Origin: Podarcis filfolensis
Taxonomy: Eukaryota
Direction: 5' to 3' (one strand)
DNA length: 64,000 nt
Assembly (NCBI GenBank): GCA_964270895.1
Contig: OZ185442.1
Shown piece after piece: positions 3,651-61,702 of the stretch; within the stretch, counting starts at the first letter, position 1, and every line of letters begins with the position of its first letter. The notes below the pieces were generated by a model. The model was not told the DNA's origin. It did not search any database and saw only the letters and a list, made by a program, of their open reading frames with translations. The position numbers and the translations under genes are program-made.

Positions 3651-3785
3651 NNNNNNNNNNNNNNNNNNNNNNNNNNNNNNNNNNNNNNNNNNNNNNNNNN
3701 NNNNNNNNNNNNNNNNNNNNNNNNNNNNNNNNNNNNNNNNNNNNNNNNNNNNNNNNNNNNNNNNNNNNNNNNNNNNNNNNNNNNN
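3651..3785. other. Assembly gap (135 N)
   Basis: Run of N in the sequence. Confidence 1.
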
Positions 3786-10285: not shown

Positions 10286-10878
10286 TTGACAAAGTGTTAT
10301 CGCTTTGCAGAGTTGTCATAATCACCCAAAGAGGCAAATTCTATTTATTTGATGCTTGAATGTCTGATTCATCAGACATCCTCTGCCAAGTCCGGGAAAC
10401 GGAGACAGTAGCGTGGAAGGAGCCGAGCTTCGCTTGTCTATCTCCAGGTCAATACATTTATTTTTGTGAAGGAAAGCTTCTCTCTTTCCTCGCATCCTCG
10501 CCATCCCCCCCCCTCACCACGCCATCCTCAATCCCTTTCTCAAATGTTTTGTTGAAGAGTAGAAGTGCTCTCTTCCATTGTCAGAGGCCTCTCTTCTGCC
10601 CAGAAAGAGATAAGAGGGGAGAGAGAAAATTGAAGGGTTTCCGACACAGCAGCTTTCCTTGGCTCACAAGCGGATGGCTGTTGTTGGTATGTTTATATCT
10701 ACCAAATGGGAGCAGCAATTGAGTTGGGGGGGGGGAGTACTTCTTGAAATGAAATGGGGAGGGGCAGGGAGTGGGAAGGTAGGTGCCTGAAATCAATGGG
10801 TAGAGCAGTTATGATTAGTAATAGACAAACCTATCAGTTTCAGCTTCTCTCAGTTTCTCATCTTCCTACTGTTGTTTA

Positions 10879-11104
10879 CAGTGGTACCTCGGGTTACAAA
10901 CACTTCAGGTTGCAGACTCTGCTAACCCAGAAATATTACCTTGGGTTAAGAACTTTGCTTCAGGATGAGAACAGAAATTGTGCTCTGGCAGTCCGGCGGC
11001 AGCGGGAGGCCCCAGTAGCTAAAGTGGTACCTCAGGTTAAGAACATTTTCAGGTTAAGAACGGACCTCCAGAATGAATTAAGTTCTTAACCCAAGGTACC
11101 ACTG
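10879..11104 (-). mobile_element. Tc1/mariner (Tigger/pogo-like) MITE, copy 1
   Basis: TIRs CAGTGGTACCTCGGGTT / AACCCAAGGTACCACTG flanked by TA on both sides; reverse-complement homolog of 14044-14269 and 60473-60687 (strand is relative to those copies). Confidence 0.9.
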
Positions 11105-11106
11105 TA

Positions 11107-11310
11107 TATTTGTTTATCTATTTGTTGCATTTTTATCCCCCTTTTTTTCTCCAAGGAGCTCCAGGGGGGTTTACATGATTCTCCCCCGCTCCTCATTTAT
11201 TCTCCACAATAACCCTGTGAGTTAGGTTAGGCTCAAAGGTGGTGACCAGCCCAAGGTTACCCAGGGGGCTTCATGGCTGAGTGGGGATTAAGATGGCAGA
11301 GCCAGCCCAA
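11107..11310 (-). mobile_element. Squam3/MIR-like SINE, degraded
   Basis: CCACAATAACCCTGTGAGTTAGGTTAGGCTC...CCCAAGGTTACCCAG...GCTTCATGGCTGAGTGGGG matches the MIR-core-like copies at 24321, 45222 and 59572. Confidence 0.7.
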
Positions 11311-13856: not shown

Positions 13857-14043
13857 TGGTTTCTCTCTGTTTCTCATTTTTCCAATCTTAAGTTTGGTTC
13901 TCCATATTTCCACATCAGTTTGTTTTTCCATGTCCTGATGAAAATTCATCAATATTTTATTGCAAATTTATCCTAACGTTCCCATTGTTGCACACAGTTT
14001 TCCCTAATATACACATTTGTGCAAATAAACTTCCCTCCACATA

Positions 14044-14269
14044 CAGTGGTACCTCTGGTTACGTACTTAATTCGTTCCAGAGGTCCGGTCTTAACCTGAA
14101 ACTGTTCTTAACCTGAAGCACCACTTTAGCTAACGGGGCCTCTTGCTGCCACCACACCGCTGGAGCACGATTTCTGTTCTCATCCTGAAGCAAAGTTCTT
14201 AACCCGAGATACTATTTCTGAGTTAGCAGAGTCTGTAACCTGAAGCGTATGTAACCTGAGGTACCACTG
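14044..14269 (+). mobile_element. Tc1/mariner (Tigger/pogo-like) MITE, copy 2
   Basis: TIRs CAGTGGTACCTC / GAGGTACCACTG, TA on both sides. Confidence 0.92.
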
Positions 14270-14297
14270 TAATGCATTTTTGTATGTTATTTTCACT

Positions 14298-18612: not shown

Positions 18613-19066
18613 CCTACACCTACATGATTTTAGGGATGGGGCAGGTAAAGATGCAGCTGGGTGAATCCAGGAGGACCCCCAAACTACAGACAATGGGTTG
18701 AATCCAATGCTAGCCCTTCTCAGAGTAGACACACACATGTGTGAATGCCATGGCAGTTTACTTCCCCATATGAACCTGCTCCCACTTGGGGTCAGATTAA
18801 ATACATACTTGACAGATATGGTTGAATTCTGTCCACCGCACACCTACACATGTGCAGCACATATGAAATGGCACACCAGCAAAGAGTTTTAAAAATAAAT
18901 AAATAAAAGTTTAAGTTCCCTCTAAAGCAGTACTCAGCCCCTTCTTCATTAGACCTAAGTGGAAATTTTCCACTTTCTCAAAATTGAAGGGAATCTTATG
19001 TAGGGCTGAGGCTCCCTGAGCAAAGAAGCAGTCAGATTAATCAACAGAAACCAGACACGCAGAATC

Positions 19067-19072
19067 CACACA

Positions 19073-19136
<64 letters not shown>
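19067..19136. repeat. Compound (CA)12(GA)23 microsatellite
   Basis: Directly visible. Confidence 0.95.
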
Positions 19137-19138
<2 letters not shown>

Positions 19139-20372
19139 TTCTGCTCAAGACAATTGACGGCTGCCCTCCCTTCCTCTCCAGAAACATCCTTCCCTCTTGC
19201 ATCCTGATAAACAAGGGCTTCTTCTCTCCTTGTTCCCCAAGTTTATTAAGCTCTCAGCCACTCACCGCTGCACCTCCCCTTCCTATGACCTCTAACAATG
19301 ATAATGACTCTGCTGGTGATGTGCAAACATGTCTTTTGACTCTCCTGCTTGATTGATAAGGAGACACAAGCCTCCTCCATCCCAATGCAGCTACAGTGAG
19401 AGCTTCTCTGCCCTGGCTCAGTGGGTTTGCTTTGCTCCTTATTTGAAATCTTGATTTTAAAACTGCAAGGCCTTTAAAAAAAAAGAAATCCTCTGCATGG
19501 GTTTCCAGATCCTGGGTTTCCAGAAGACTGGACATGAAAAAACCAACTCCTGAGACCCATCTCATATTGGCCACCCACCTGGACTCTCCCTGGGATAATT
19601 CTACAACAGGAAAGTGTGGCTTTCATTGCAAAGCTATGTTGTGTCTGTATCCAGAAGGTCATTGGTCCAAATTCAGAAGGCCAACTGGTACTCATATTTT
19701 GGTATACAGCACATATGGATGGGTAGCATTTTGCCTCAGTTCCCAAGGATCTATCCATCCATCCACTTTATGCAACCAACAGAATCGAACAGTGAAGTTT
19801 TCCCCCACCTTAAACTCAACTAGCTGTTGGTGTTCTGCACATTTGCCCCCTTTCTATGGACAAACAGCACCCCTGCACACAGAAAACTAGTATGTCAGAG
19901 AGAAGGTGAGAAGTCTGGCATGCCAGTTTTCTAATACATAGAGTTTTATTGGGGGGGGGCAGGCAGTGTTTAAATATGTAAGAGCCCTTCCCAAGTGCGT
20001 GAAGTGGTAGTAAATTCCATACCATGGAGAAATCTCTCATGTGAACAAGCCACAAAAAGGGGAACGATAAGCAGATTGGGTTAGCCTGGTTGTAGCAAAG
20101 AGAATCTGGGGGAATGTTGGCATTTTTGGAGAGTAGAAACTTCCATCCCATTCAATATCATTAGTTTCAGCCTGAAGTCAAATTGGAGACCATTCAGCAC
20201 AACTCCAGTTGGTAAACCAGTCAGCAACTAAGGCCTCATCTGCACTACACATTTAAAGCAGCACCATACCATTTTAAGCAGGCATGGCTGCCCCTGAAGA
20301 ATCCCAGGAACAGTGTCAGACGTTGGGCTCTCAAATTTCAGTGGCACCCTGTATTGTTAGGACACCTCTATG

Positions 20373-26459: not shown

Positions 26460-26650
26460 AAACAGGGGAAGCTTCCTTATGCTGAGCCATAGCATTGGTC
26501 TTTCTAGCTCAATATTGTCTGACTGACTGGCAGCAGCTCCCCATGATTTTACGTAGGGGTCTATTCCTGTCCTACCTGTAGATTCCAGGGATTGAACCTG
26601 GAATCATCTGCATGCAAAACAAATGCTCTAGCACTGAGCTACTGCCCCCC
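26460..26650 (-). mobile_element. tRNA(Cys-like)-head SINE
   Basis: CAGGGATTGAACCTGG..CTGCATGCAAA..GCTCTAGCACTGAGCTAC (reverse tRNA head); body homologous to 12170 and 58712 copies. Confidence 0.75.
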
Positions 26651-27284: not shown

Positions 27285-27340
<56 letters not shown>

Positions 27341-27396
27341 TGTGTGTGAAAGGCTTATCCCCTCCCCACTCTTCTGAAACTGATGCCACAGCAACA

Positions 27397-27458
<62 letters not shown>
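27285..27458. repeat. (CT)25-(TG)5 ... (AC)10(AG)22 compound microsatellites
   Basis: Directly visible; the two blocks are reverse complements of each other. Confidence 0.95.
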
Positions 27459-27461
<3 letters not shown>

Positions 27462-28513
27462 GGCAGTCCTTGCTACCTTCCTTCCCTGGTCAGTTTGTAC
27501 TTTTTGATTGCTTGTGGCTGTGAGTTCCGTTCCATGTATAAATCGCATACATTTGCTAAATGGTCACTTATTTTGCATAAAAGAAATTATTTTGCATAAA
27601 GGGAAAGGGCTATATCTTAGAACTCATCTAGATGGAGCAATGGTCTCACCTAGTATAAGACAGATTCCTATGTTCTTATACATTGCTAAGGTTTTCCCCC
27701 TCCTTTTCCTTTTAAAAAAGCATTTGTGTAATTGTAACTCTGCTTCTTCTCCTCATCCATGCATCAATGGATCCCAAACTGTATCTCAAGAGGAAAAAAA
27801 TGAGGGGCACAGTGCTCATGGGAGGGAGCGAGGGAGGGAGAGATGGGGAGAAATGGCACACACTAGAAAGATTTCCCTCCATGGTCATGTCTGCCCATTT
27901 AATCACAGGTTAATTGCCATGAAGCGGGCATCAGGGGGAGAAGCTTCCAGGCCAGTTACATCGTTAGAAGAGGGATAAATAAATAAATAATGCATTGTCT
28001 TCCAAAGCCCGCTGTGTGCAAGTTACACGGTAGCCATAATTACTTTTTTTTGGAGATGCAATTACTGGGCAATGTGGTGGAACATGTAATTTTCAGAGTA
28101 TTGACATAAGCCCTTTCCCAAGAACCCTCTTTATGTCTGGGGAAGGGGTCAGACTCTAACATCTTGCTGAAAAGTGGTCAGAAATCAAGAGCTCCTGCTG
28201 ATTTTAAACAAGTCTGTGTGGATAACCCATCTGAACTTTGTTGTTGTTACACATAAAGGGAAATGACCCATATGTAATGTTCACCAGCAGATGACTCCAT
28301 AATCAGCATATGGAATTCACTGCCACAGGATGGCATGAAGGCACCTACTCTGAGGCCTTCAAAAGTGGATTAAGCCAGAATAGCTTAAAAAACACCCAAT
28401 GCTGTTACCTGCAAGACCTGCAGTACACTTGACAGAGGGGTGTACAGCAGAGTTTTATAACATTATTCAGGATGTGTGGGAAACGGATTTTCTCCTTCTC
28501 TTATACTACTGGA

Positions 28514-28822
28514 ACTCTGGGGTTGCGGTGCTCATCCCACTTTATTGGCCGAAGGAGCCGGCGTACATCTTCCGGGTCATGTGGCCAGCATGACTAAGCC
28601 GCTTCTGGCGAACCAGAGCAGCACACGGAAACGCCGTTTACCTTCCCACCAGAGCGGTACCTATTTATCTACTTGCACTTTGACGTGCTTTCGAGCTGCT
28701 AGGTTGGCAGGAGCAGGGACCGAGCAACGGAAGCTCACCCCGTCGTGGGGATTCGAACCGCCGACCCTCTGATTGGCAAGTCCTAGGCTCTGTGGTTTAA
28801 CCCACAGCGCCACCCGCGTCCC
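28514..28822 (-). mobile_element. Sauria SINE, lacking its 3' tail
   Basis: Minus strand starts GGGACGCGGGTGGCGCTGTGGGTTAAACCAC; ends near CCCCAGAGT without the (ACCTTT)n tail. Confidence 0.92.
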
Positions 28823-30277: not shown

Positions 30278-30630
30278 TAAAGGTAAAGGGACCGCTGACC
30301 ATTAGGTCCAGTCGTGGCCGACTCTGGGGTTGCGGCGCTCATCTCGCTTTATTGGCTGAGGGAGCCAGCGTACAGCTTCCGGGTCATGTGGCCAGCATGA
30401 CTAAGCCGCTTCTGGCGAACCAGAGCAGTGCACGGAAACGCCGTTTACCTTCCCGCCGGAGCGGTACCTATTTATCTACTTGCACTTTGACGTGCTTTTG
30501 AACTGCTAGGTTGGCAGGAGCAGGGACCAAGCAATGGGAGCTCACCCTGTCGTGCGGATTCAAACCGCTGACCTTCTGATCGGCAAGTCCTAGGCTCTGT
30601 GGTTTAACCCACAGCGCCACCCGCGTCCCC
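30278..30630 (-). mobile_element. Sauria SINE, full length with 12-bp TSD
   Basis: TGATGGGTATAG at 30266-30277 and 30632-30643; CpG-rich body; (ACCTTT)n tail. Confidence 0.95.
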
Positions 30631-36390: not shown

Positions 36391-38004
36391 TCCTGCAACT
36401 TGCTATTTCAGATATACTGTCCATCCCCTGACTGAGGCCAGGTGGGAGACCCCCGGACCTCCCAATACCACTCCTCCAGTCAGTTTGCAAAGCAATTCAC
36501 AGAAATTATTGTACATAAGAATCAGGCAACCACAGCCAGTGGTGGATTTGAGTACAGAGTTTATCTATGAGCATGTGCATAAACCTACTTTGTCCCTCTC
36601 GCTTGCAGAAACTAGCCACTAGCCTCCCATTCTTGCAAGCCTGCAGTTCATATAAGTGCTTTTGCATAAGCATAATTACAACCAAGAGAAACAAACGAAA
36701 AATAATAATGAAAGAAATGGTTGTCATTGAGCTCCTGCAGGCTTTTATTTGCCATGCTATTTTAAAAAAGGACACTAATTTCAGAATGGCATATTACACT
36801 CAGTATGGTCGCATCTTACACAGCAGTTTGGTTCCAAGGCTTCTGCATATACAGACTTGAACCTCTCCCATGTGAGCATCTGGAGCCATTGCACTGAACG
36901 GGCCTTGCCCACTAAGCAAGGCAGAGAGCTTAAAAGCTATTTCTGCCTTCACTGCCTTGGTTATTAGAAGCTCTTTTCATGCCAGGAAAATGTTGTGGGC
37001 ATTTAATTTGCACCATTTCAACTGGACAGACTTCAACAGCGAAAGGTTGAAATCACGCAAGTTAAATGTAGGTAAGATGCAATCATACTGTATTGTTACG
37101 ATTATCCTCTTCCAGATCTGTTATGGGTAGGTGCCTAAACACTGATTTTGGAGTCTAAAATATTTTTCCCCATCTGTAGACCCTTCCTGCTTGCAACCCC
37201 GTGTTTTAAAGGTGAGAAGAAGGTAGATCAAGATCTACTAGCAGATTTCTATGGGAGCTCTGGTAGATCACCATGGATTTCTGCCTCCCACTTGTTTAAT
37301 GATAGTGACAACTCTTCTCCCTAAATTAGACTGCTCAGAGAAAGAAAACTTGTTGGAGGAGACCAGGAATAGATTTTTGTGTGAAAGGACTGGGAGCTCA
37401 GTTCTGGTATTGAAAACTAATTCCTGGTCTGAGATGCACTTAGATGAGATGTCTGGTTCTTTTATTCTAAGCACATGCCTTCCATCACCCCCTCCACTAT
37501 GTTACACTTGGCTGCAGCTGGTGGGAAACCTGTGAGAGGGGGTACTAAATAGGTCCTACAAGCTTGAAGCCTGCCCACCTCCATGGCTCTACTGCCAGTT
37601 GTGCGGGAGTTATTTTAGGTACACCAGTGGAATAAGCGTCTGGATTGTTTTATAAACTTGCTTTAAAAAGTGATATGCTGAAACCAATTTCTCCAAAGTT
37701 TTCTTCCCCACCAAAGGAGGCTTACATTTTTCTTCCTCATTCTCAGGATGCTTTAGAATTTCTTTAGGATTTCAGTGACTGTAGCATTTGGCTTCCCTTG
37801 TTGTTGCAAGTTGCCCGAGGCTGGTGGGTGTGCTTTTCTTTCCATTAAACATGTTCTACTTTAGAAGGCTCCGGTGCTCAGCCGTTTACCTAGCTGGCCA
37901 CACCTTTTCATCTAGAAAAGGCCCAGGAGACAAGTTACCTCATGACATCTTCCCCAGGGCTTTAATTCAAATGCAGAAAGCTGGGTTGGCTTTAGGTAGA
38001 GGCC

Positions 38005-38215
38005 ATTTAGTCCAACACATCCAACTTCTACCTAAAAAATTCCAATGAAGGAGAGTTCACCACCTTCCAGTGTTGTCCATTCCACTATCAAACAGCTCAT
38101 CCCATCAGAAAGTTATTTTTAATGTTTAGTCGAGTCTCCTTTCTTGTAATTTCAAACCATTAGTTCAGGTCCTGTCCTTTGGAGCCACGGAAAACAAGCT
38201 CACTTCATCTTGAGG
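38005..38215 (-). mobile_element. CR1 3' fragment
   Basis: CCATTTAGTCCAAC..GAAGGAGAGTTCACCACCTTCC..CAGAAAGTT..TAATGTTTAGTCG..GGAAAACAAGCT; homologous to 25980-26280 and 52140-52466. Confidence 0.72.
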
Positions 38216-38458
38216 GCATCATTGTTTTCCTAGGAAATGGGGTCACCCAGGAAGGCTACTGATTGAAGAGGGCTGGTAAGTTCTAGAATGAAAGAAAAGA
38301 CAGTCACAACCCCCCTCAGTCACCTTTGAAAGCAAGGGAATCACAACCAAACCCCACACCACACCCATCGGTATACCACTGATTTCTTTCTCTCCCCTTT
38401 GCTAAATTTCAAATGCTACTTTTTATTTTTGTTAATTGAGGGAGAAGGGAGGGGTAGT

Positions 38459-38474
38459 AGAAATTTTCAGCACA
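38459..38474 (+). repeat. Left target-site duplication of L1 (AGAAATTTTCAGCACA)
   Basis: Identical 16-mer at 44565-44580 right after the poly(A); inferred nick TTTCT/AC resembles the L1 endonuclease preference TTTT/AA. Confidence 0.95.
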
Positions 38475-40608
38475 CTCTTTTCGTGCTAGCTTCTGGCTCT
38501 TGCAATGTAAGTACTAAGTCATCTGCAAATGCTCTCAGTTTATATTGTTTGGCTCCGACCTGAATCCCTTTAACCAACTGGTCCCTCCTAATCATATTAA
38601 GCAAAACCTCCAGGACCGATATAAAAAGTAATGGGGAGATAGGGCACCCCTGACGTGTCCCTTTTTCAATCTTGAACTCTTCTGTAACCACATTATTTAC
38701 AATTAGTTTGGCTTTCTGTTCAGAGTATATTGCACCTATACCATTTTCGAACCCTTGGCCTACCCCCATCCCCCGGAGGTTCTTCAACATAAAACTCCAA
38801 GAAATGTTGTCAAAGGCTTTCTCGGCATCCACAAATATCAAAACAGCTTTAGTGTTTATGTTCACTTCCAGCTTTTCCAAAATGTCAATTATATTCCTTA
38901 CATTGTTCGACAAGTGCCTTTTTGGGAGAAAGCCCGCTTGGTCCCCGTGAATCTCCTCCATCAAAACTCTCTTCAGTCTTTTTGCCAAAATATCAGCAAA
39001 GATTTTGTAATCCACATTCAATAACGAGATGGGTCGGTAGTTTTTAAGTTGGGTCTTTTCAGTCTCTGTCTTTGGTATAAGTGTAATGTAGGCCTCTCTC
39101 CACGTATCGGGTGCCCTTTTCCCTTCCATAATCTCATTGCAGACTTCCTTCAAAGGTTGTATCAACCCTTCCTTCAAAACTTTGTAGTATTTGGAAGTCA
39201 GTCCATCCGGTCCAGGGGATTTGCCCAGCGTCATGCCTTGAATGGCATCTTCTATTTCTTGTGCTGATATCTCCTGGTTCAATATTATCTTACTTTCATG
39301 CGAAACCTTTTTCAGCCCATTTTCCTCGAGGAACTGTTGTATGTCCATTTCTTTTTGCGGCCCTTGTGTGTAAAGTTGTCTAAAGTAGTTCTGAAAACAA
39401 TTCCTAATTTCCGCTGGGTTGCTTATGTTTTTTCCTTCCACTTCTATATTTGTTACCGTGTTGAGTTTTTGTCTCTTCTTTATTTGCCAAGCCAGTAACT
39501 TGCCACATTTATCAGCAGATTCAAAAGTCTTTTGTCTCATTTGTTTAATTCTCCACTCTAATTCTTGATTCATCAGTTCCATATATTGTGTTTGATGAAA
39601 TTTGATTTCTCTTAGAATCTCTTGGGATTTTGGCTTCGATCTTAATTGTTTTTCCCCTTCTTTTATCTTTTCCAAAATTCTCTCCTTTTTCTCATTTTGC
39701 TTTCTCTTCTTTAAAGTATTTTGCTGAATCAAAAACCCTCTCATCACGGCTTTGCTTGCGTCCCATACTATTCTTTTTTCTACTTCAGACCTTAAGTTGA
39801 TTTCAAAATAATCTTTCAAGGTTTTTTGGGCCTTCTTACAGATCTCCTCGTCTCTAAATAAGGTGTCATTCATTCTCCATCTGAAGGAACCAGTTGTTGT
39901 TTGCCTCATCACCATCTTTACAGCATTATGGTCGGAGAAAGTTTTTGGGCAGATTTCTACTTTTTTTATATTCGGAGCCATACTGCTAGTCACCCAGATT
40001 TGGTCAATCCTTGTCCATGTCATTTTGGCTTCAGAAAAGAAGGTCCCCTCTCTTTCTAATGGGTGTTTTGTTCTCCAAATATCAATCAAGTCCATATTGT
40101 CAGTCATTTCAAAAAAAGTCTTTGGTAGTCTTCCATCTTTTGTTATTACCTGTCTTTGTGCCTTGTCCATATTTGTTGAAACCACTCCATTCATATCTCC
40201 CATCAAAATTAAGTTGTAATCCATATGGTCCATCAAAATTTCATGCAACTTCTTAAAAAATTCAGCTTTCCCTTCGTTTGGTGCATAGATTCCCACTATC
40301 AAATACTTCTCTCCTTGAGATTGAATTTCAATTGCCAAATATCTTCCTTGATCATCTTTAAAAATTTGTTTCGGTTGCAATTTTTCTTTTGCATAGATCA
40401 CCACTCCTCTCTTTTTTACTCTGTCTGAAGATATAAATTCCTGTCCCAGTCTTTTATTTATTAATAATTTTCTGTGTGCTCTTGTCACGTGGGTCTCTTG
40501 TAGGCAAATCAAGTCCAATTGGTCTTTCTTTAAGGCATGAAATATATTTTTTCTCTTCCTGGGAATATTTAAGCCATTACAATTCCAGGTTAGAAGTTGC
40601 AGAGCCAT
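38467..40608 (-). CDS. L1 ORF2 N-terminal 712 aa (APE endonuclease plus RT to just past FADD), truncated by the inversion
   Basis: EN motifs WNCNG, QETH, IYAPN, GDMN, RID, SDH; RT motifs KSPGPDG, YRPISLLN.DYKI, QAGF, DAEKAFD, GTRQGCPISPLLF, FADD; final Cys and TGA come from the TSD. Confidence 0.95.
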   Translation of the reverse strand: MALQLLTWNCNGLNIPRKRKNIFHALKKDQLDLICLQETHVTRAHRKLLINKRLGQEFISSDRVKKRGVVIYAKEKLQPKQIFKDDQGRYLAIEIQSQGEKYLIVGIYAPNEGKAEFFKKLHEILMDHMDYNLILMGDMNGVVSTNMDKAQRQVITKDGRLPKTFFEMTDNMDLIDIWRTKHPLEREGTFFSEAKMTWTRIDQIWVTSSMAPNIKKVEICPKTFSDHNAVKMVMRQTTTGSFRWRMNDTLFRDEEICKKAQKTLKDYFEINLRSEVEKRIVWDASKAVMRGFLIQQNTLKKRKQNEKKERILEKIKEGEKQLRSKPKSQEILREIKFHQTQYMELMNQELEWRIKQMRQKTFESADKCGKLLAWQIKKRQKLNTVTNIEVEGKNISNPAEIRNCFQNYFRQLYTQGPQKEMDIQQFLEENGLKKVSHESKIILNQEISAQEIEDAIQGMTLGKSPGPDGLTSKYYKVLKEGLIQPLKEVCNEIMEGKRAPDTWREAYITLIPKTETEKTQLKNYRPISLLNVDYKIFADILAKRLKRVLMEEIHGDQAGFLPKRHLSNNVRNIIDILEKLEVNINTKAVLIFVDAEKAFDNISWSFMLKNLRGMGVGQGFENGIGAIYSEQKAKLIVNNVVTEEFKIEKGTRQGCPISPLLFISVLEVLLNMIRRDQLVKGIQVGAKQYKLRAFADDLVLTLQEPEASTKRVC

Positions 40609-40615
40609 GATGGGA

Positions 40616-41704
40616 TTATTTACTCCTTCCTCCTACAGCTCCCTGTTTTTGTTCCTCGTCTGTCGGTGGTACCGTGTTCGTGTCCAGTGATGGATGCCCT
40701 TGTCCTGGAAATGTCTCTTTCTGTAGGTCTTCTTCGTGTTCTCCCAAGAACTTGTCTTTATCACTTACAGTCTTTATTCTTCTCTTCTTTCCCTTATATT
40801 TAAAAGACAAGCCTTGGGGAAATTCCCACCTGAATGGTATGTAGTTCTTCTTCAGCAGTGTCACCAGGTCTTTATAATGTCCTCTTGCGTCCAAGATACT
40901 CTTAGGGATGTCTTTAAAGATCTCAATAAAAAAGTCTTCAATTCGAAGGGCTGTTTGGTAGTGCAGGTTCAATATTTTATCTCGCTCCTCCTTTGATCTT
41001 AAGGTAATAAGACAATCTCTGGGTCGATTTCTCTTCTGTCTTATTCCCAATCTAAATGCACTTTCTATCTTAAAATCTTCTTTCTTCAGCTCCTGCTTCC
41101 AAAAGTCAGAAAATTCTTTTGTCAAATCATCCACCAAGTTCTCTCCTTCCTTTTCCGGCACAAGTCTGATCCTCAGGTTCCTCTCCTTGCGTTGCATATC
41201 CTGCATAGAGAGTGCCAGTTCATATTCATCCAATTTCTTGTAAACTGGTGGAAATTTTTCCTCCGCAGCAGTTGCAATTTCCTTAGCTTCCTCGGCTATC
41301 TTTCGTGTTGTAGATGAATCTTCCAATAATTTCCCAATTGCTTCTGCATTTGAGTTCACTTTATTCCCTAGGTCAGTTATACTTTTAGTATTTAGGTCAA
41401 TTTTCCCAGAGATTTCTTCAATTTTTTTATTTGTTTCAGCAACTTGTACTTTAGTTTCAGCAACTTGCAATTTAGTCTCCGCACCTTGCTTTTTTAGTTC
41501 CTCCAAAGAGTCATTTATCTTCTCCAATACCTTGGCAAATGATTCTTCTGTAGACATTGCTTTCGCTTTTGGCTTTGCAGCCACTATAGTTCCAGAGGCT
41601 CCTGTTACAGAAGCCCTTCTTTGCATGTAAGTGTCAATTTTGTATTGTCTGCCAGATCTCAAGGTTGTTTCTTGTAACTCCCCTTTCTCTTTACCATCTG
41701 CCAT
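40616..41704 (-). CDS. L1 ORF1p (362 aa): coiled coil, RRM, C-terminal domain
   Basis: Heptads including AETKLQV-AETKVQV-AETNKKI; RRM-type RKERNLRIRLVPE..SAFRLG..PRDCLI; IFKDIP and FRWEFP; 7-nt spacer to the ORF2 ATG. Confidence 0.92.
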   Translation of the reverse strand: MADGKEKGELQETTLRSGRQYKIDTYMQRRASVTGASGTIVAAKPKAKAMSTEESFAKVLEKINDSLEELKKQGAETKLQVAETKVQVAETNKKIEEISGKIDLNTKSITDLGNKVNSNAEAIGKLLEDSSTTRKIAEEAKEIATAAEEKFPPVYKKLDEYELALSMQDMQRKERNLRIRLVPEKEGENLVDDLTKEFSDFWKQELKKEDFKIESAFRLGIRQKRNRPRDCLITLRSKEERDKILNLHYQTALRIEDFFIEIFKDIPKSILDARGHYKDLVTLLKKNYIPFRWEFPQGLSFKYKGKKRRIKTVSDKDKFLGEHEEDLQKETFPGQGHPSLDTNTVPPTDEEQKQGAVGGRSK

Positions 41705-42680
41705 AACAAAGTCTTTTAGTCAAGGTCATTCCCAGACTTTGAAACTCACAAACAAAGTTCTCAAATTTTAAACTCCACTTGTTGCTGAAACAATTTGTAG
41801 GTCCTCTAGGGGGCGTAGAGTCAGTTCTATACTTCTCAAAGTAACCCCACACTCTTCAAAAAAGAAGGAATAAAAGTTTCCTAGTCCCTTTCAATTTTTC
41901 TTTCCTTTTTCAAGGGGATCCCAGTCAATAGTGTCCTGTAAGTAACTTTGTAATGCCACAGAAACAGTGTTTCAAATTGGAAGTAACCAAAGTCAATTTG
42001 AGATATTTTTTAGCTTCTTATGGCAACAGTCCTTAGCCAGTTCCTTTTCTCCGGCAGTCCGATCCCAGGTTAAAGAGCAGCGATAATTAATCCAATTCTT
42101 TTAAATTGGCAGGGAAACACTTTTAAAATCTTCTTCCCCCTCCTCCTGCCTTCGGGGGGGGGGAGTTCTTTGCTTTGGTGGTGGATTTCTTAAATCCCGC
42201 AAATTTCCTCTCAAGCAGTTACAGCTAGAGTGCCTTTCGCTTTGATCTTGCTACAGAACGGAAAGCAGACTTCCTTTTTAGTGCTTGTCCGTCTCGGTGC
42301 CCAATTTCTTTACTTTTAGTGTCCAGTTATATTTTAGCGGTCAATCCTACTCACGGATAGTTGTTCTTTTAATCCAATTTCCCGGGAAGAAGTCAGCGCT
42401 CTCCGCTAATGGCGACGCGGCTTCGCTTCGCAGGCTGGGTGAAGACGACTCTCAGCACCGCTCCAAGACCCCTCCGCTCCTCCGGAGCCTTTAAAAAGGC
42501 TATTTCGCAGCGTCGGGGGGGCGCAAAGGTGCCCGCCGAGTCTCCAGTTCACAGGCAACGCGCCTGTGATTTTTAAGGGTCCCCGCTTCGCCGTAGCTGA
42601 CAGGACCCGAACCCACGAAGCAGATCTCTCCCGGAGCTCCGGTTGAGATCCGCCATTAAGCGCCGGCGCTGACCGGAAGT
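41705..42680 (-). promoter_or_regulatory. L1 5'UTR / internal promoter (~976 nt) with CpG-rich 5' end
   Basis: Minus strand begins ACTTCCGGTCAGCGCCGGCGCTTAATGGCGG; ~42390-42680 keeps many CpGs; lies directly upstream of ORF1. Confidence 0.85.
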
Positions 42681-42681
42681 T

Positions 42682-44283
42682 TTGGAAATAATCCAAGAGT
42701 TTGGTCAAATGGCAGGATTCAAATTGAATAAGTCTAAGACAAAGGTTTTGGAGAAAAATTTGACACAGATAGAAAAGGAAAGGTTCCAGAATGAGACAGG
42801 GTTGACTGTGGTTAAAAAAGTGAAATATTTGGGTAGAAATATGACAGCTAAAAATGTGAATTTGTTTAAAGATAATTATGAAAAAACTTGGAGAGAAGTG
42901 AAAAAAGATTTGGAGATTTGGTCCAACTTGAAGCTTTCCTTGTTAGGCCGTATTGCAGCTATAAAGATGAATGTATTGCCAAGAATGTTGTTTTTGTTCC
43001 AAGCATTGCAAATAATTGATAAAATGGATTGTTTCAAGAGGTGGCAAAAAGACATATCTAAATTTGTCTGGCAGGGCAAAAAGCCCAGAATTAAATTTAA
43101 GATACTAACGGATTCAAAGGAAAGAGGGGGGTTTGCCCTGCCAGACTTTAAACTTTACTATGAAGCGGCAGCTTTCTGCTGGCTGAAAGAATGGCTACTT
43201 CTTGAAAACACAGACATTTTGGATTTGGAAGGTTTTAATAACATTTTTGGGTGGCATGCATATTTGTGGTACGACAAGGTTAAAGCACATAAAAGTTTTA
43301 AAAATCATATTGTCAGAAAAGCACTACTAAATGTCTGGGACAGATATAAAGACTTGCTGGAAAATAAAACTCCAAGGTGGCTGTCGCCAATGGAAGCTAA
43401 GGCAGTTAAAAAATTAAATATGGAGCCCAAGTGGCCAAGATACTGGGAAATTTTGGAAAAGGAAGGGGACAAATTGAGATTGCAGAGTTTTGAGAAATTA
43501 AAAGGGAAGGTGAGAGATTGGTTCCACTACCATCAAATTAATGAAGCGTTTAAACTGGACAGTAAAATTGGCTTCCAGGTGGAAAAATCAAAATTGGAGA
43601 CAGAACTGTTAGAACCCAGTACTAAGAATTTGTCCAAAATGTACAATTTGCTGCTGAAATGGAATACACAAGATGAAACGGTTAAATCGGTCATGATTAA
43701 ATGGGCTCAGGACATTGGTCATAATATTTTGTTTGCTGATTGGGAAAAGTTGTGGACCACCGGGATAAAATTTACGGCATGTAATGCCTTAAGAGAAAAC
43801 ATTATGAAAATGATATATAGGTGGTACATAACCCCAGTCAAGCTTGCAAAGATTTACCATGTGCCTGACAACAAATGTTGGAAATGTAAAGAAACTGAAG
43901 GTACATTTTTTCATCTTTGGTGGACCTGCCCGAAGATTAAGGCATTCTGGGAAATGATCTATAATGAACTTAAAAAGGTATTTAAATATACTTTCCCCAA
44001 GAAACCAGAGGCCTTTCTCTTGGGTATTGTCGGCCAAGGGGTGTTAAAGACGGATATAACTTTCTTTATGTATGCTACAACAGCAGCTAGAATACTCATT
44101 GCGAAGTACTGGAAGACGCAAGAACTACCCACACTGGAAGAATGGCAGATGAAGGTGATAGACTATATGGGCTTGGCAGAAATGACGAGCAGAATCCGAA
44201 ACCAGGGAAGAGAAGCAGCGCAAGAAGAATGGAAAAAATTCAAGGACTATTTAAAGAAATATCATAAAGTTAATGAAAGTTAG
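42682..44283 (+). CDS. L1 ORF2 C-terminal 533 aa (late RT motifs and CCHC Cys-rich domain); no true start codon
   Basis: LEIIQEFGQMAGFKLN, KYLG, RIAAIKMNVLPR and CWKC..EGTFFHLWWTC; begins mid-ORF at TTG (Leu). Confidence 0.9.
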   Translation: MEIIQEFGQMAGFKLNKSKTKVLEKNLTQIEKERFQNETGLTVVKKVKYLGRNMTAKNVNLFKDNYEKTWREVKKDLEIWSNLKLSLLGRIAAIKMNVLPRMLFLFQALQIIDKMDCFKRWQKDISKFVWQGKKPRIKFKILTDSKERGGFALPDFKLYYEAAAFCWLKEWLLLENTDILDLEGFNNIFGWHAYLWYDKVKAHKSFKNHIVRKALLNVWDRYKDLLENKTPRWLSPMEAKAVKKLNMEPKWPRYWEILEKEGDKLRLQSFEKLKGKVRDWFHYHQINEAFKLDSKIGFQVEKSKLETELLEPSTKNLSKMYNLLLKWNTQDETVKSVMIKWAQDIGHNILFADWEKLWTTGIKFTACNALRENIMKMIYRWYITPVKLAKIYHVPDNKCWKCKETEGTFFHLWWTCPKIKAFWEMIYNELKKVFKYTFPKKPEAFLLGIVGQGVLKTDITFFMYATTAARILIAKYWKTQELPTLEEWQMKVIDYMGLAEMTSRIRNQGREAAQEEWKKFKDYLKKYHKVNES

Positions 44284-44565
44284 AATGATGTTGGACTGGA
44301 AAGTAAATGGTTACTATTAGCAATGGTTAAGACAAGGAAAATAAGGAAGAATAGTCTAAATTTAAATTAAAATAAGGGAAGATTTGCTGAACAATCGATA
44401 AGAATTTGGAATACAGAAAGGGGAAGCATGAGGAAGTCGGGGAAGATAGGATATGAAATTAGGATATGAAATGATACATGTTTTTTGTTTTGTTTTTGTT
44501 TTTGTATGTTTATGTTTGTTGTATTGTGTTTATATGGAAAAATAAAAATATTTAAAAAAAAAAAA
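44284..44565 (+). terminator. L1 3'UTR with AATAAA and short poly(A)
   Basis: T/G-rich tract 44478-44533, AATAAA 44541-44546, A-run 44554-44565. Confidence 0.88.
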
Positions 44566-44580
44566 GAAATTTTCAGCACA
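44565..44580 (+). repeat. Right target-site duplication of L1
   Basis: AGAAATTTTCAGCACA, identical to 38459-38474. Confidence 0.95.
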
Positions 44581-45221
44581 GCACTAGTTCAAAGTACACA
44601 CATTATCTCGTGATTTTAAAACCTAAATAATCTCTGCCTCTCTCTCTGTCTCTTAAAATAAAACCCCAATATGTTTCTCACCTGTTCTATTTTAAATGGC
44701 TTTTGTTTAATGGCCCATATGCTGCCTAGTAAAATTAGATGGCACCAATTCTGTTTTGTTCTTGGTCACTTGCTGATCCCAAAGCTCTAGTCTTTTGGGG
44801 GGAGGTGTCAGGGACACTCAAGATCAAAAACCTCACAGCAAGAGCATGGAACCTTGTGGCCTGAGGTTTCATGTCCTCAAGTTGTCTGCAGGCACAAATG
44901 ATCAGCTGGCAATATATGGCCTCTGGTCAGACCGGATATAAACATAAGAACCTGGACTTCTGCTCTTAACAGGTCAACACAGTAGGACTTTTCCTGGAAG
45001 GTCCCAGCTCTGAACACCTACACACACACACACACACACACACCAGTCTTAAGTTTAGTTCACTCCATTTCTTCATTAGTTAGCTATTTTAAAAAATCTG
45101 TATATTTTTGTGTGCATTTCTCCTAATACATTTGTAAATGTAAATGTGCCTAAAATGCACTTCTACCCACCATCCTGGATCCAGGGTTGGCTATCCCTGA
45201 AAATAATGTTTCTTTTTAAAA

Positions 45222-60028: not shown

Positions 60029-60472
60029 TCTGTAAGCCCAGCTAGAATGGCCGCCTTCTTCAGATTCCTGTTTGGCCATTTCCTCTTTCCACCCCATTGG
60101 TGGGTGAAAATTATAAGAAGGCACCCAGGTTCATTGATCCTTAGCAAAGCCCTCCATCTGAACACATTTCATATTGCTGATCCTCTAGCTAACATGAGTG
60201 CAACTGTTAAACTCAGCCTTATATTATCTCTCTCTACCTCCAAATCCCTCCTCAAAAGCCACCTCTTCCGTGAAGTGTTGGATTCGATGCTTTCGACTTC
60301 ATCCCCAGCAGAGATGAATCCTAAGTTCACAAAACTGCAATTTGCTCACGTCCACCCGCTTTCTTTGCCTTCCACCCTTTCCTCTTTCCTTGTGTCGTCT
60401 CTCACACTGTTGAAATTCAGATTGCAAAAATTCATTTTGGCAGGGCCTTGCACTTTCAGTGGCTGCTGTTTA

Positions 60473-60687
60473 CAGTGGTACCTCGGGTTAACTATTTAAT
60501 TCATTCCGGAGGTCCGTTCTTAACCTGAAACTGTTCTTAACCTGAAGCACCACTTTAGCTAATGGGGCCTTGCACCGCCGGAGCACGATTTCTGTTCTCA
60601 TCCTGAAGCAAAGTTCTTAACCCGAGGTAGTATTTCTGCGTTAGCAGAGTCTGTAACCTGAAGCGTATGTAACCTGAGTTACCACTG
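60473..60687 (+). mobile_element. Tc1/mariner (Tigger/pogo-like) MITE, copy 3
   Basis: CAGTGGTACCTCGGGTT ... AACCTGAGTTACCACTG, TA flanks; homologous to 14044-14269. Confidence 0.9.
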
Positions 60688-61702
60688 TATTGTACTCAGC
60701 ACAGCTTCACTTTTGTTGTTGGAGTTATGTAACGAAATGCACCATATGGGGTCAGTTTCTCATCATGCTCCCCACCCTGAACTGGGATTTCATTTAAACT
60801 ATAGGGCATATTGTGGACAATAATACCCTGACTGGGATGCCCTGGAGAAATGGGGGGGGGGGCTAGCTCCCTACATCTCCCACTCAAACAGATCCTTCGG
60901 GAAAATCAATTCCTCCTTTTTATGGCTACGTATATTGACCCATCCCAAACTTCCTTTCCTTTCCTTTCCTTCTTTCTTTGTGAAGTTTTATGGAAGGATT
61001 GGTCAGTGAGGACATGGTGGCTACAGTTGGGGTGTAACATTACTTACTGGCATTTGGAACATAGCTCTTTGTGGCCTTTGAGAGATTTGTGGAGCGAAAC
61101 CTGGCCCTTTTGTGATTTCCTGTGAAATCAGCAACATCTGTAGGGCCAAAGGTCAGCCACGTCTGCACTATTGCCTCATGCCAACTTTGTTTGATGGCAA
61201 CTGGAAGGCTGGGGTGTGAGCAAGTGGCATTTCCAGGAAGATGAGGGGAAGTCTCACTGAATAACTCCAGAATCAGTATCCTTTCAGCCCGTCTCTAAGA
61301 TTCTTTTGTACCAACATTAAGGCTGATACGCCTGATTGTCAAAACAGACATGTAAATATTACTAGTTATTATTGCCCCAAAGGACAGGCCTAATTTCCCC
61401 TCTTTCCCACAATGCCCTGGTCTTATAACCTTCGCAATTGCATCTGCCATTCTAATTGCAACCTCTGTGTGCAGCCACGGTTAAATTTGATCTGCAGTGC
61501 CATGGAAATTTGCATTAATTGGTTCATAATGCACTGCCGGGAACTTTTAATATCTTTATGGGTGACAGAAAACATCACTTGAAAGAGGACATGGAAGAGG
61601 TTAGGCTTCAGTCACTTGGGTGAATCCAATCCCACATTACAGATAATAAGTGCTCTAAAGGATGGCTTGGTTTTTAAGTGGACATGGATGTTTTTCTAAT
61701 GA

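Follow-up and report, generated by a model that had tools for sequence, protein, structure and literature searches.

A complete L1 retrotransposon with an inverted 5' part in the lizard Podarcis filfolensis, a probable product of twin priming

In human and chimpanzee, L1 retrotransposon insertions with an inverted 5' part have been attributed to twin priming (Ostertag and Kazazian 2001, as cited in PMC2912911 and PMC12016303). Such 5' inversions make up 18-31% of the human L1 insertions (PMC12016303, PMC2912911). In the human germline, the inverted complementary DNA (cDNA) has a median length of 751 bp, and the whole insertion a median of about 1.4 kb (PMC12016303). In cell culture, 5' inversions were obtained only with human L1 in human cells, and none was found in chicken DT40 cells (PMC4245944). 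Here, an insertion of this kind is described from the lizard Podarcis filfolensis, in a stretch of 64,000 nucleotides (nt) of contig OZ185442.1 (assembly GCA_964270895.1), which is referred to below as the window. Between positions 38459 and 44580 it holds an L1 whose first 4.2 kb are flipped relative to its last 1.9 kb, very probably the result of a single retrotransposition of a young lacertid L1 that was resolved by twin priming. The mechanism is already known, and the locus is a clean new example of twin priming, not a new mechanism. An earlier note, made from the letters of this DNA, had held that such inversions are mainly characterised in mammals. Within the collection of papers that was searched, no lizard case of twin priming was described and no paper mentioned twin priming together with squamates.

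Several traits are shared with the twin-primed L1 copies of human and chimpanzee. The element is flanked by a single target-site duplication (TSD) of about 15 nt; its 3' segment stands in sense orientation and carries the A tail, whereas its 5' segment is inverted and adjoins the second TSD copy through an internal position of L1. Microhomology is found at both junctions, the two cDNA ends lie close on the L1 map and the copy is incapable of giving a full protein of open reading frame 2 (ORF2p), again as in the primate cases. Human 5' inversions have TSDs of 10-20 nt, a range that the 16 nt found here fits (PMC4245944). In 46% of the human inversions the two cDNA ends are at most 20 bp apart (PMC12016303), and the exact abutment seen here is therefore within the known range. 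In contrast to the human cases, the inverted cDNA is 4.2 kb long and runs to the 5' end of the RNA, which is far above the 751-bp median (PMC12016303). Also unlike the human and chimpanzee cases, nothing is lost at the join, and the host is a lizard.

The L1AC1-15 elements of Anolis carolinensis are longer than 6 kb, have 5' untranslated regions (5'UTRs) of 800-1,500 nt and are young, with mostly low-frequency polymorphic insertions; about 40% of the polymorphic L1 insertions are full length, showing a processive reverse transcriptase (PMC5389967). The element of the window resembles them in its length of more than 6 kb, its long 5'UTR and its young insertion, whereas its ORF2p is only about 40% identical to theirs, and inverted insertions are not described in PMC5389967. 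An inverted cDNA of 4.2 kb fits a lizard L1, because so many of the polymorphic Anolis insertions are full length.

A colinear relative was found on Podarcis lilfordi chromosome OX395131.1, taken as the loci L003 and L004, the latter with a larger flank. This copy belongs to the same L1 lineage, with ORF2 80-90% identical in amino acids (aa) and a homologous 5'UTR head that has the same CTTCCGG start. It also has an A tail and a TSD (18 nt), and measures about 6.1 kb after a nested insertion is discounted. Unlike the element of the window, it is colinear and old, its frames are broken and a G precedes CTTCCGG. The ORF1 protein (ORF1p) of the window is only 53% identical to a protein of P. lilfordi listed in UniRef as an L1 RRM-domain protein. 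The nested insertion (L004 13912-18263, 4.35 kb) splits the ORF2 of the P. lilfordi copy and encodes a distant reverse transcriptase, 25% identical to the N-terminal piece of ORF2 in the window.

Layout and coding content of the element

The 16-mer AGAAATTTTCAGCACA was found as a perfect TSD at 38459-38474 and 44565-44580, with no further occurrence in the window on either strand. The identity of the two copies ends at both edges and does not extend to either side, and 6,090 nt of L1 sequence lie between them. The order of the parts is TSD, inverted 5'UTR-ORF1-ORF2 (1-711), sense ORF2 (712-1245)-3'UTR-A tail, TSD. The composite within this one TSD pair thus consists of an inverted 5' segment that lacks an A tail and a 3' segment in sense orientation that has one; AATAAA is likewise present at the sense end only. 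No further copies of the element were found within the window. Its features are as follows.

38459-38474, plus strand: left TSD copy, 16 nt; its last A (38474) is a 1-nt microhomology with the U after the ORF2 breakpoint
38475-40608, minus strand: N-terminal piece of ORF2, 711 codons and the first base of codon 712, no stop
40609-40615, minus strand: spacer between ORF1 and ORF2, 7 nt
40616-41704, minus strand: ORF1, 362 aa and stop; a long coiled coil, then an RRM and a C-terminal domain, as predicted
41705-42679, minus strand: 5'UTR, about 975 nt; read on the minus strand, it begins with the letters CTTCCGG, as in the TSD-flanked P. lilfordi copy
42378-42677, minus strand: CpG-island-like head of the 5'UTR, GC 63%, CpG observed/expected 1.09
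42678-42680, unstranded: inversion junction AGT; AG is common to the L1 5' end and the ORF2 breakpoint, T belongs to ORF2
42680-44283, plus strand: C-terminal piece of ORF2, from the rest of codon 712 to the stop, with a CCHC motif and no internal stop
44284-44553, plus strand: 3'UTR, with short T/G-rich repeats and AATAAA at 44541-44546
44554-44564, plus strand: pure A tail, 11 nt (12 when the A at 44565 is counted), adjoining the right TSD copy
44565-44580, plus strand: right TSD copy, 16 nt

The element is an L1-clade non-LTR (long terminal repeat) retrotransposon. ORF2 starts on the minus strand at 40608 and runs down to 38475, and the rest of it, on the plus strand, starts at 42680 and ends with the stop codon at 44281-44283. 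The N-terminal piece (N piece) gave Pfam matches to Exo_endo_phos and RVT_1, corresponding to an APE-type endonuclease and a reverse transcriptase through FADD, and matched human L1 ORF2p (8sxt) over residues 9-715 with E 3e-123. The C-terminal piece (C piece), 534 codons read from 42679, matched residues 719-1239 of the same protein with E 4e-42. The catalytic motifs of the endonuclease, FADD and the CCHC motif (CWKC...HLWWTC) are all present in the two pieces. All of the closest proteins are from Podarcis, and ORF2 is 76-90% identical to P. muralis entries. Exact-protein look-ups of ORF1p of the window and of two P. muralis ORF2 proteins (P0002 and P0126) returned no record.

No Pfam match was obtained for ORF1p, and a PDB sequence search gave coiled-coil noise only. 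In the AlphaFold model (19 homologues, mean pLDDT 69), a helix of 93 residues precedes alpha/beta domains. The best 11 PDB matches of this model were human L1 ORF1p, with E values from 1e-9 to 2e-4, the best of them a trimer. On this predicted fold, ORF1p is of the L1 type, with a putative coiled coil, RRM and C-terminal domain. Within ORF1, at 41429-41489, a 21-nt unit stands three times in tandem and encodes VAETK-like repeated heptads of the coiled coil.

ORF2 is cut 14 codons past FADD. Since this split falls inside the reverse transcriptase, no complete ORF2 protein can come from this copy, though each part is intact. The existing frame of the N piece continues into the TSD and reaches a stop at 38467-38469. 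The putative promoter-ORF1 unit is intact and is directed into the left flank.

The join of the two halves and the 5' end

Each half was aligned separately to colinear relatives, namely human ORF2p, P. muralis ORF2 proteins and the TSD-flanked P. lilfordi copy. On human ORF2p the pieces meet between residues 717 and 718. In alignment A1 the N piece ends with ...STKR and the C piece starts with VLEII..., and P. muralis ORF2 proteins of 1244-1245 aa read STKRVLE; compared with these, no residue is missing or doubled at the join. The two pieces add up to 711 + 534 = 1245 codons, and nothing is therefore missing from ORF2. The same was observed at the DNA level. By tblastn, residue 711 of the N piece ends at L003:11250 and residue 1 of the C piece starts at 11251; the P. 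lilfordi DNA reads AAAAGAG and then directly TTTTGGAA, letters that equal both ends in the window. By blastn, the minus strand of the window matches up to L004:13252 and the plus strand from L004:13250, the overlap being AGT only. In addition, the letters ...GAAAAG stand directly before 42678 in run X1 contigs that come from colinear copies. Judged from these alignments, the halves are neighbouring parts of one L1, with a gap of 0 and no base lost; the AGT overlap is only apparent and is accounted for by microhomology.

These results are in good agreement with what the earlier note had read from the locus. The layout that it gave (TSD, inverted 4.2 kb, sense 1.9 kb, TSD) was confirmed by the ORF map, the strands and the unique 16-mer pair. 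Its ORF2 of 1245 aa with nothing lost was borne out on human ORF2p, on the P. muralis proteins and on the P. lilfordi DNA, and the junction that it expected from re-inversion exists in nature, as the same letters stand at this place in the colinear P. lilfordi copy.

Nested or adjacent L1 fragments are common in repeat-rich genomes, and the locus could be imagined as two independent insertions, a 5'-truncated sense L1 (1.9 kb) and an adjacent antisense L1 fragment. The antisense part, however, has neither an A tail nor a TSD of its own, and one TSD surrounds both parts. Moreover, the parts meet at the same ORF2 nucleotide, for which the chance is about 1 in 6,000 even if adjacency is given. 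The two halves are also about equally distant from their relatives, at 82% and 83% aa identity to P. muralis, and at 81% versus 79-85% nt identity to P. lilfordi. Two independent insertions are considered extremely unlikely. A fold-back inverted duplication was rejected as well; the halves overlap by 3 nt at most.

The inverted half ends at 42679 with CTTCCGG, read on the minus strand, without a preceding G. In the P. lilfordi copy the 18-nt TSD AAAAGAGTAAGGTGAGCG stands before the head and again after the A tail, with the nick site TTTT/G. This copy starts with G, followed by CTTCCGG, and its 5'UTR head is homologous to that of the window. A Logan contig of a third family has G and CTTCCGG too, with unrelated sequence upstream. 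The view that the inverted half reaches the 5' end of the RNA, at most one G short, is supported by these comparisons; the statement of the earlier note that it extends to the very 5' end holds to within that one G, by way of the TSD-defined full-length P. lilfordi relative. The extra G of the relatives may be the first templated base or may be derived from the cap.

The terminal 300 nt of the 5'UTR have a CpG observed/expected ratio of 1.09, against 0.16-0.18 in the flanks, and the CpG retention noticed earlier is real. This CpG-rich head is likely the internal promoter. No tandem promoter monomers were found in the 5'UTR, and a truncation inside such an array is therefore ruled out. The CpG-island-like terminal 300 nt and the absent monomer array both agree with a complete 5' end.

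The CpG-rich head also contains a 23-nt imperfect inverted repeat (42392-42414 and 42651-42673, 74% complementary). An ATGGCG core is found in each arm, and both the P. lilfordi and the Logan relatives conserve this motif (AATGGCGG; alignments A3 and A4). The core resembles the YY1 site that lies close to the start of human L1.

Junctions, age and course of the insertion

At the left junction, pairing is possible between the last A of the TSD (38474) and the U after GAG in ORF2, a microhomology of 1 nt, exactly as the earlier note had it. For the internal junction it had proposed 3 nt (AGT, 42678-42680). The letters are correct, but the shared stretch is 2 nt: AG (42678-42679) belongs to either side, as the reverse complement of the first L1 letters, CT, and as the AG before TTTT in ORF2, while the T at 42680 fits ORF2 only. 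The proposed match to the twin-priming model is found in the single TSD, the poly(A) at the sense end only, the internal joint in ORF2, the complementary halves and the two microhomologies.

No stop interrupts the 1,607 codons of the element, its two TSD copies are identical, its tail consists of A only and its CpGs are retained. Contigs of four runs (X1, X2, X19 and X20) were aligned to 38100-44099, so that the right flank lay outside that stretch. Run X19 was the best-holding one, X1 came from the same organism but from a different sample and study, and X2 from a sister organism. The X1 flank contig matches through one 16-mer, departs from the window exactly at 38474 and continues for 182 nt. 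The X2 flank contig covers the 16-mer once, departs exactly at the same position and continues for 462 nt. That of X19 also covers the 16-mer once and departs at 38474, with an overhang of exactly 14 nt. In a graph of k = 31 and with a TSD of 16 nt, the empty-site path is private for 31-16-1 = 14 letters, and X19 was therefore read as both alleles. The geometry of the contigs suggests that X19 holds both alleles, and X1 and X2 the empty allele only. The empty allele is probably still segregating, and the insertion polymorphic. A very recent insertion, as claimed from the sequence before, is supported by the intact frames, the retained CpGs and this contig evidence for an empty allele. In the left flank, 73-77 nt at 38309-38387 are skipped by contigs of X19 and X2, probably because of an indel polymorphism a short way upstream of the insertion.

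Some observations weigh against a recent, twin-primed insertion. The microhomology at the left (5') junction is only 1 nt, as compared with 2-5 nt in about 70% of the human cases (PMC2912911). On the bottom strand the nick lies at TTCT/A or, when the shared A is counted with the tail, at TTTC/T; this is T-rich and departs from the canonical L1 sites by one letter. The 5' end was set by a relative of another species with about 81% nt identity, not by a copy of the same subfamily. That the letters by which the flank contigs run on past 38474 are those of the right flank is inferred. Finally, none of the reads and contigs listed bridges 38474/38475 or 42679/42680, and both inversion-specific junctions rest on the assembly.

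This last point bears on an assembly artefact, in which the element would be colinear, absent or stitched from different L1 copies, either by the assembler or through chimeric long reads. Flank contigs of three runs, the best holder included, depart from the window at 38474, and the element family is young and highly repeated, with thousands of contigs at 99% or more, and hard to assemble. Against this, an artefact would not yield a perfect 16-nt TSD around the composite, nor an inverted half that ends exactly at the TSD; it would not make the halves complementary to the base or let the inverted half finish at the true 5' end of L1. The 14-nt overhang of X19 is as expected for a k = 31 graph that also holds the path from A tail through TSD to flank, and 38000-45000 contains zero Ns. 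An artefact is considered improbable.

Alternatively, an ordinary colinear full-length L1 may have undergone a later inversion of 4.2 kb, with breakpoints at the L1/TSD boundary and inside ORF2. Flipping the first 4.2 kb yields the exact layout and is lossless by nature, and microhomologies of 1 and 2 nt also fit end joining. Such an event would, however, need a breakpoint within 0-1 nt of the L1 5' end, a coincidence of about one in thousands on top of a rare event, whereas twin priming, which is frequent for L1 (PMC2912911, PMC12016303), puts that breakpoint there by construction. It must also have occurred in the short life of an insertion that is apparently still segregating. No inverted repeats able to drive an inversion were found at the breakpoints. 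A later inversion is judged very unlikely.

For twin priming, we infer the following order of events. A cut by the L1 endonuclease in the bottom strand, at the left border of the 16-nt target, would have freed a 3' end that primed cDNA 1 on the poly(A) tail. The top strand would have been nicked 16 nt downstream, and its free 3' end, ...CAGCACA, would have paired through the last A with a U in ORF2. The priming site of cDNA 2 would thus lie 14 codons past FADD, with synthesis toward the RNA 5' end; this cDNA would have grown to about 4.2 kb and reached the first RNA letters. In turn, cDNA 1 would have been extended over about 1.9 kb, to the starting place of cDNA 2. The two cDNA 3' ends could then have annealed through 2 nt (AG/CT), followed by fill-in and ligation.

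Other features of the window and meaning of the locus

An interspersed repeat of about 230 nt that starts with TACAGTGGTACCTC was found at 10876-11107, 14041-14272 and 60471-60692. The three copies are 87-95% alike, stand in two orientations and are probably a short interspersed element (SINE). Near-identical compound (CA)n(GA)n microsatellites lie at 19056-19154 and 27378-27476, 8.3 kb apart and with related inverted flanks (27285-27348); they may stem from a local duplication or be members of a single repeat family. A direct repeat of 300 nt (28514-28813 and 30321-30620) is 93% identical between its copies, which are 1,807 nt apart, and the minus-strand ORFs near this repeat (169 and 246 aa) gave no Pfam match. 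At 26585-26641, on the minus strand, a partial tRNA-like match was obtained (Rfam tRNA, 39 bits, model positions 8-63 of 71), which is likely a tRNA-derived SINE head or a pseudogene. A run of 135 Ns occupies 3651-3785.

The locus adds a sauropsid example to a process known almost exclusively from primates and from assays in human cells. It is a very clean natural record, as all 6,090 bases are present and both novel junctions can be read to the base. With an empty allele that is probably segregating, each step of the model can be read from the sequence. The insertion also marks a young L1 lineage that was very recently active in a lizard host. It is possible, although doubtful at present, that twin priming of lacertid L1 is frequent and that a highly processive reverse transcriptase often reaches the RNA 5' end, which would leave complete but scrambled copies. 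If so, 5' inversion would not be limited to mammalian hosts, contrary to what the chicken cells suggested (PMC4245944), and the lengths of the two cDNAs would provide a measure of processivity and of the timing of second-strand cleavage.

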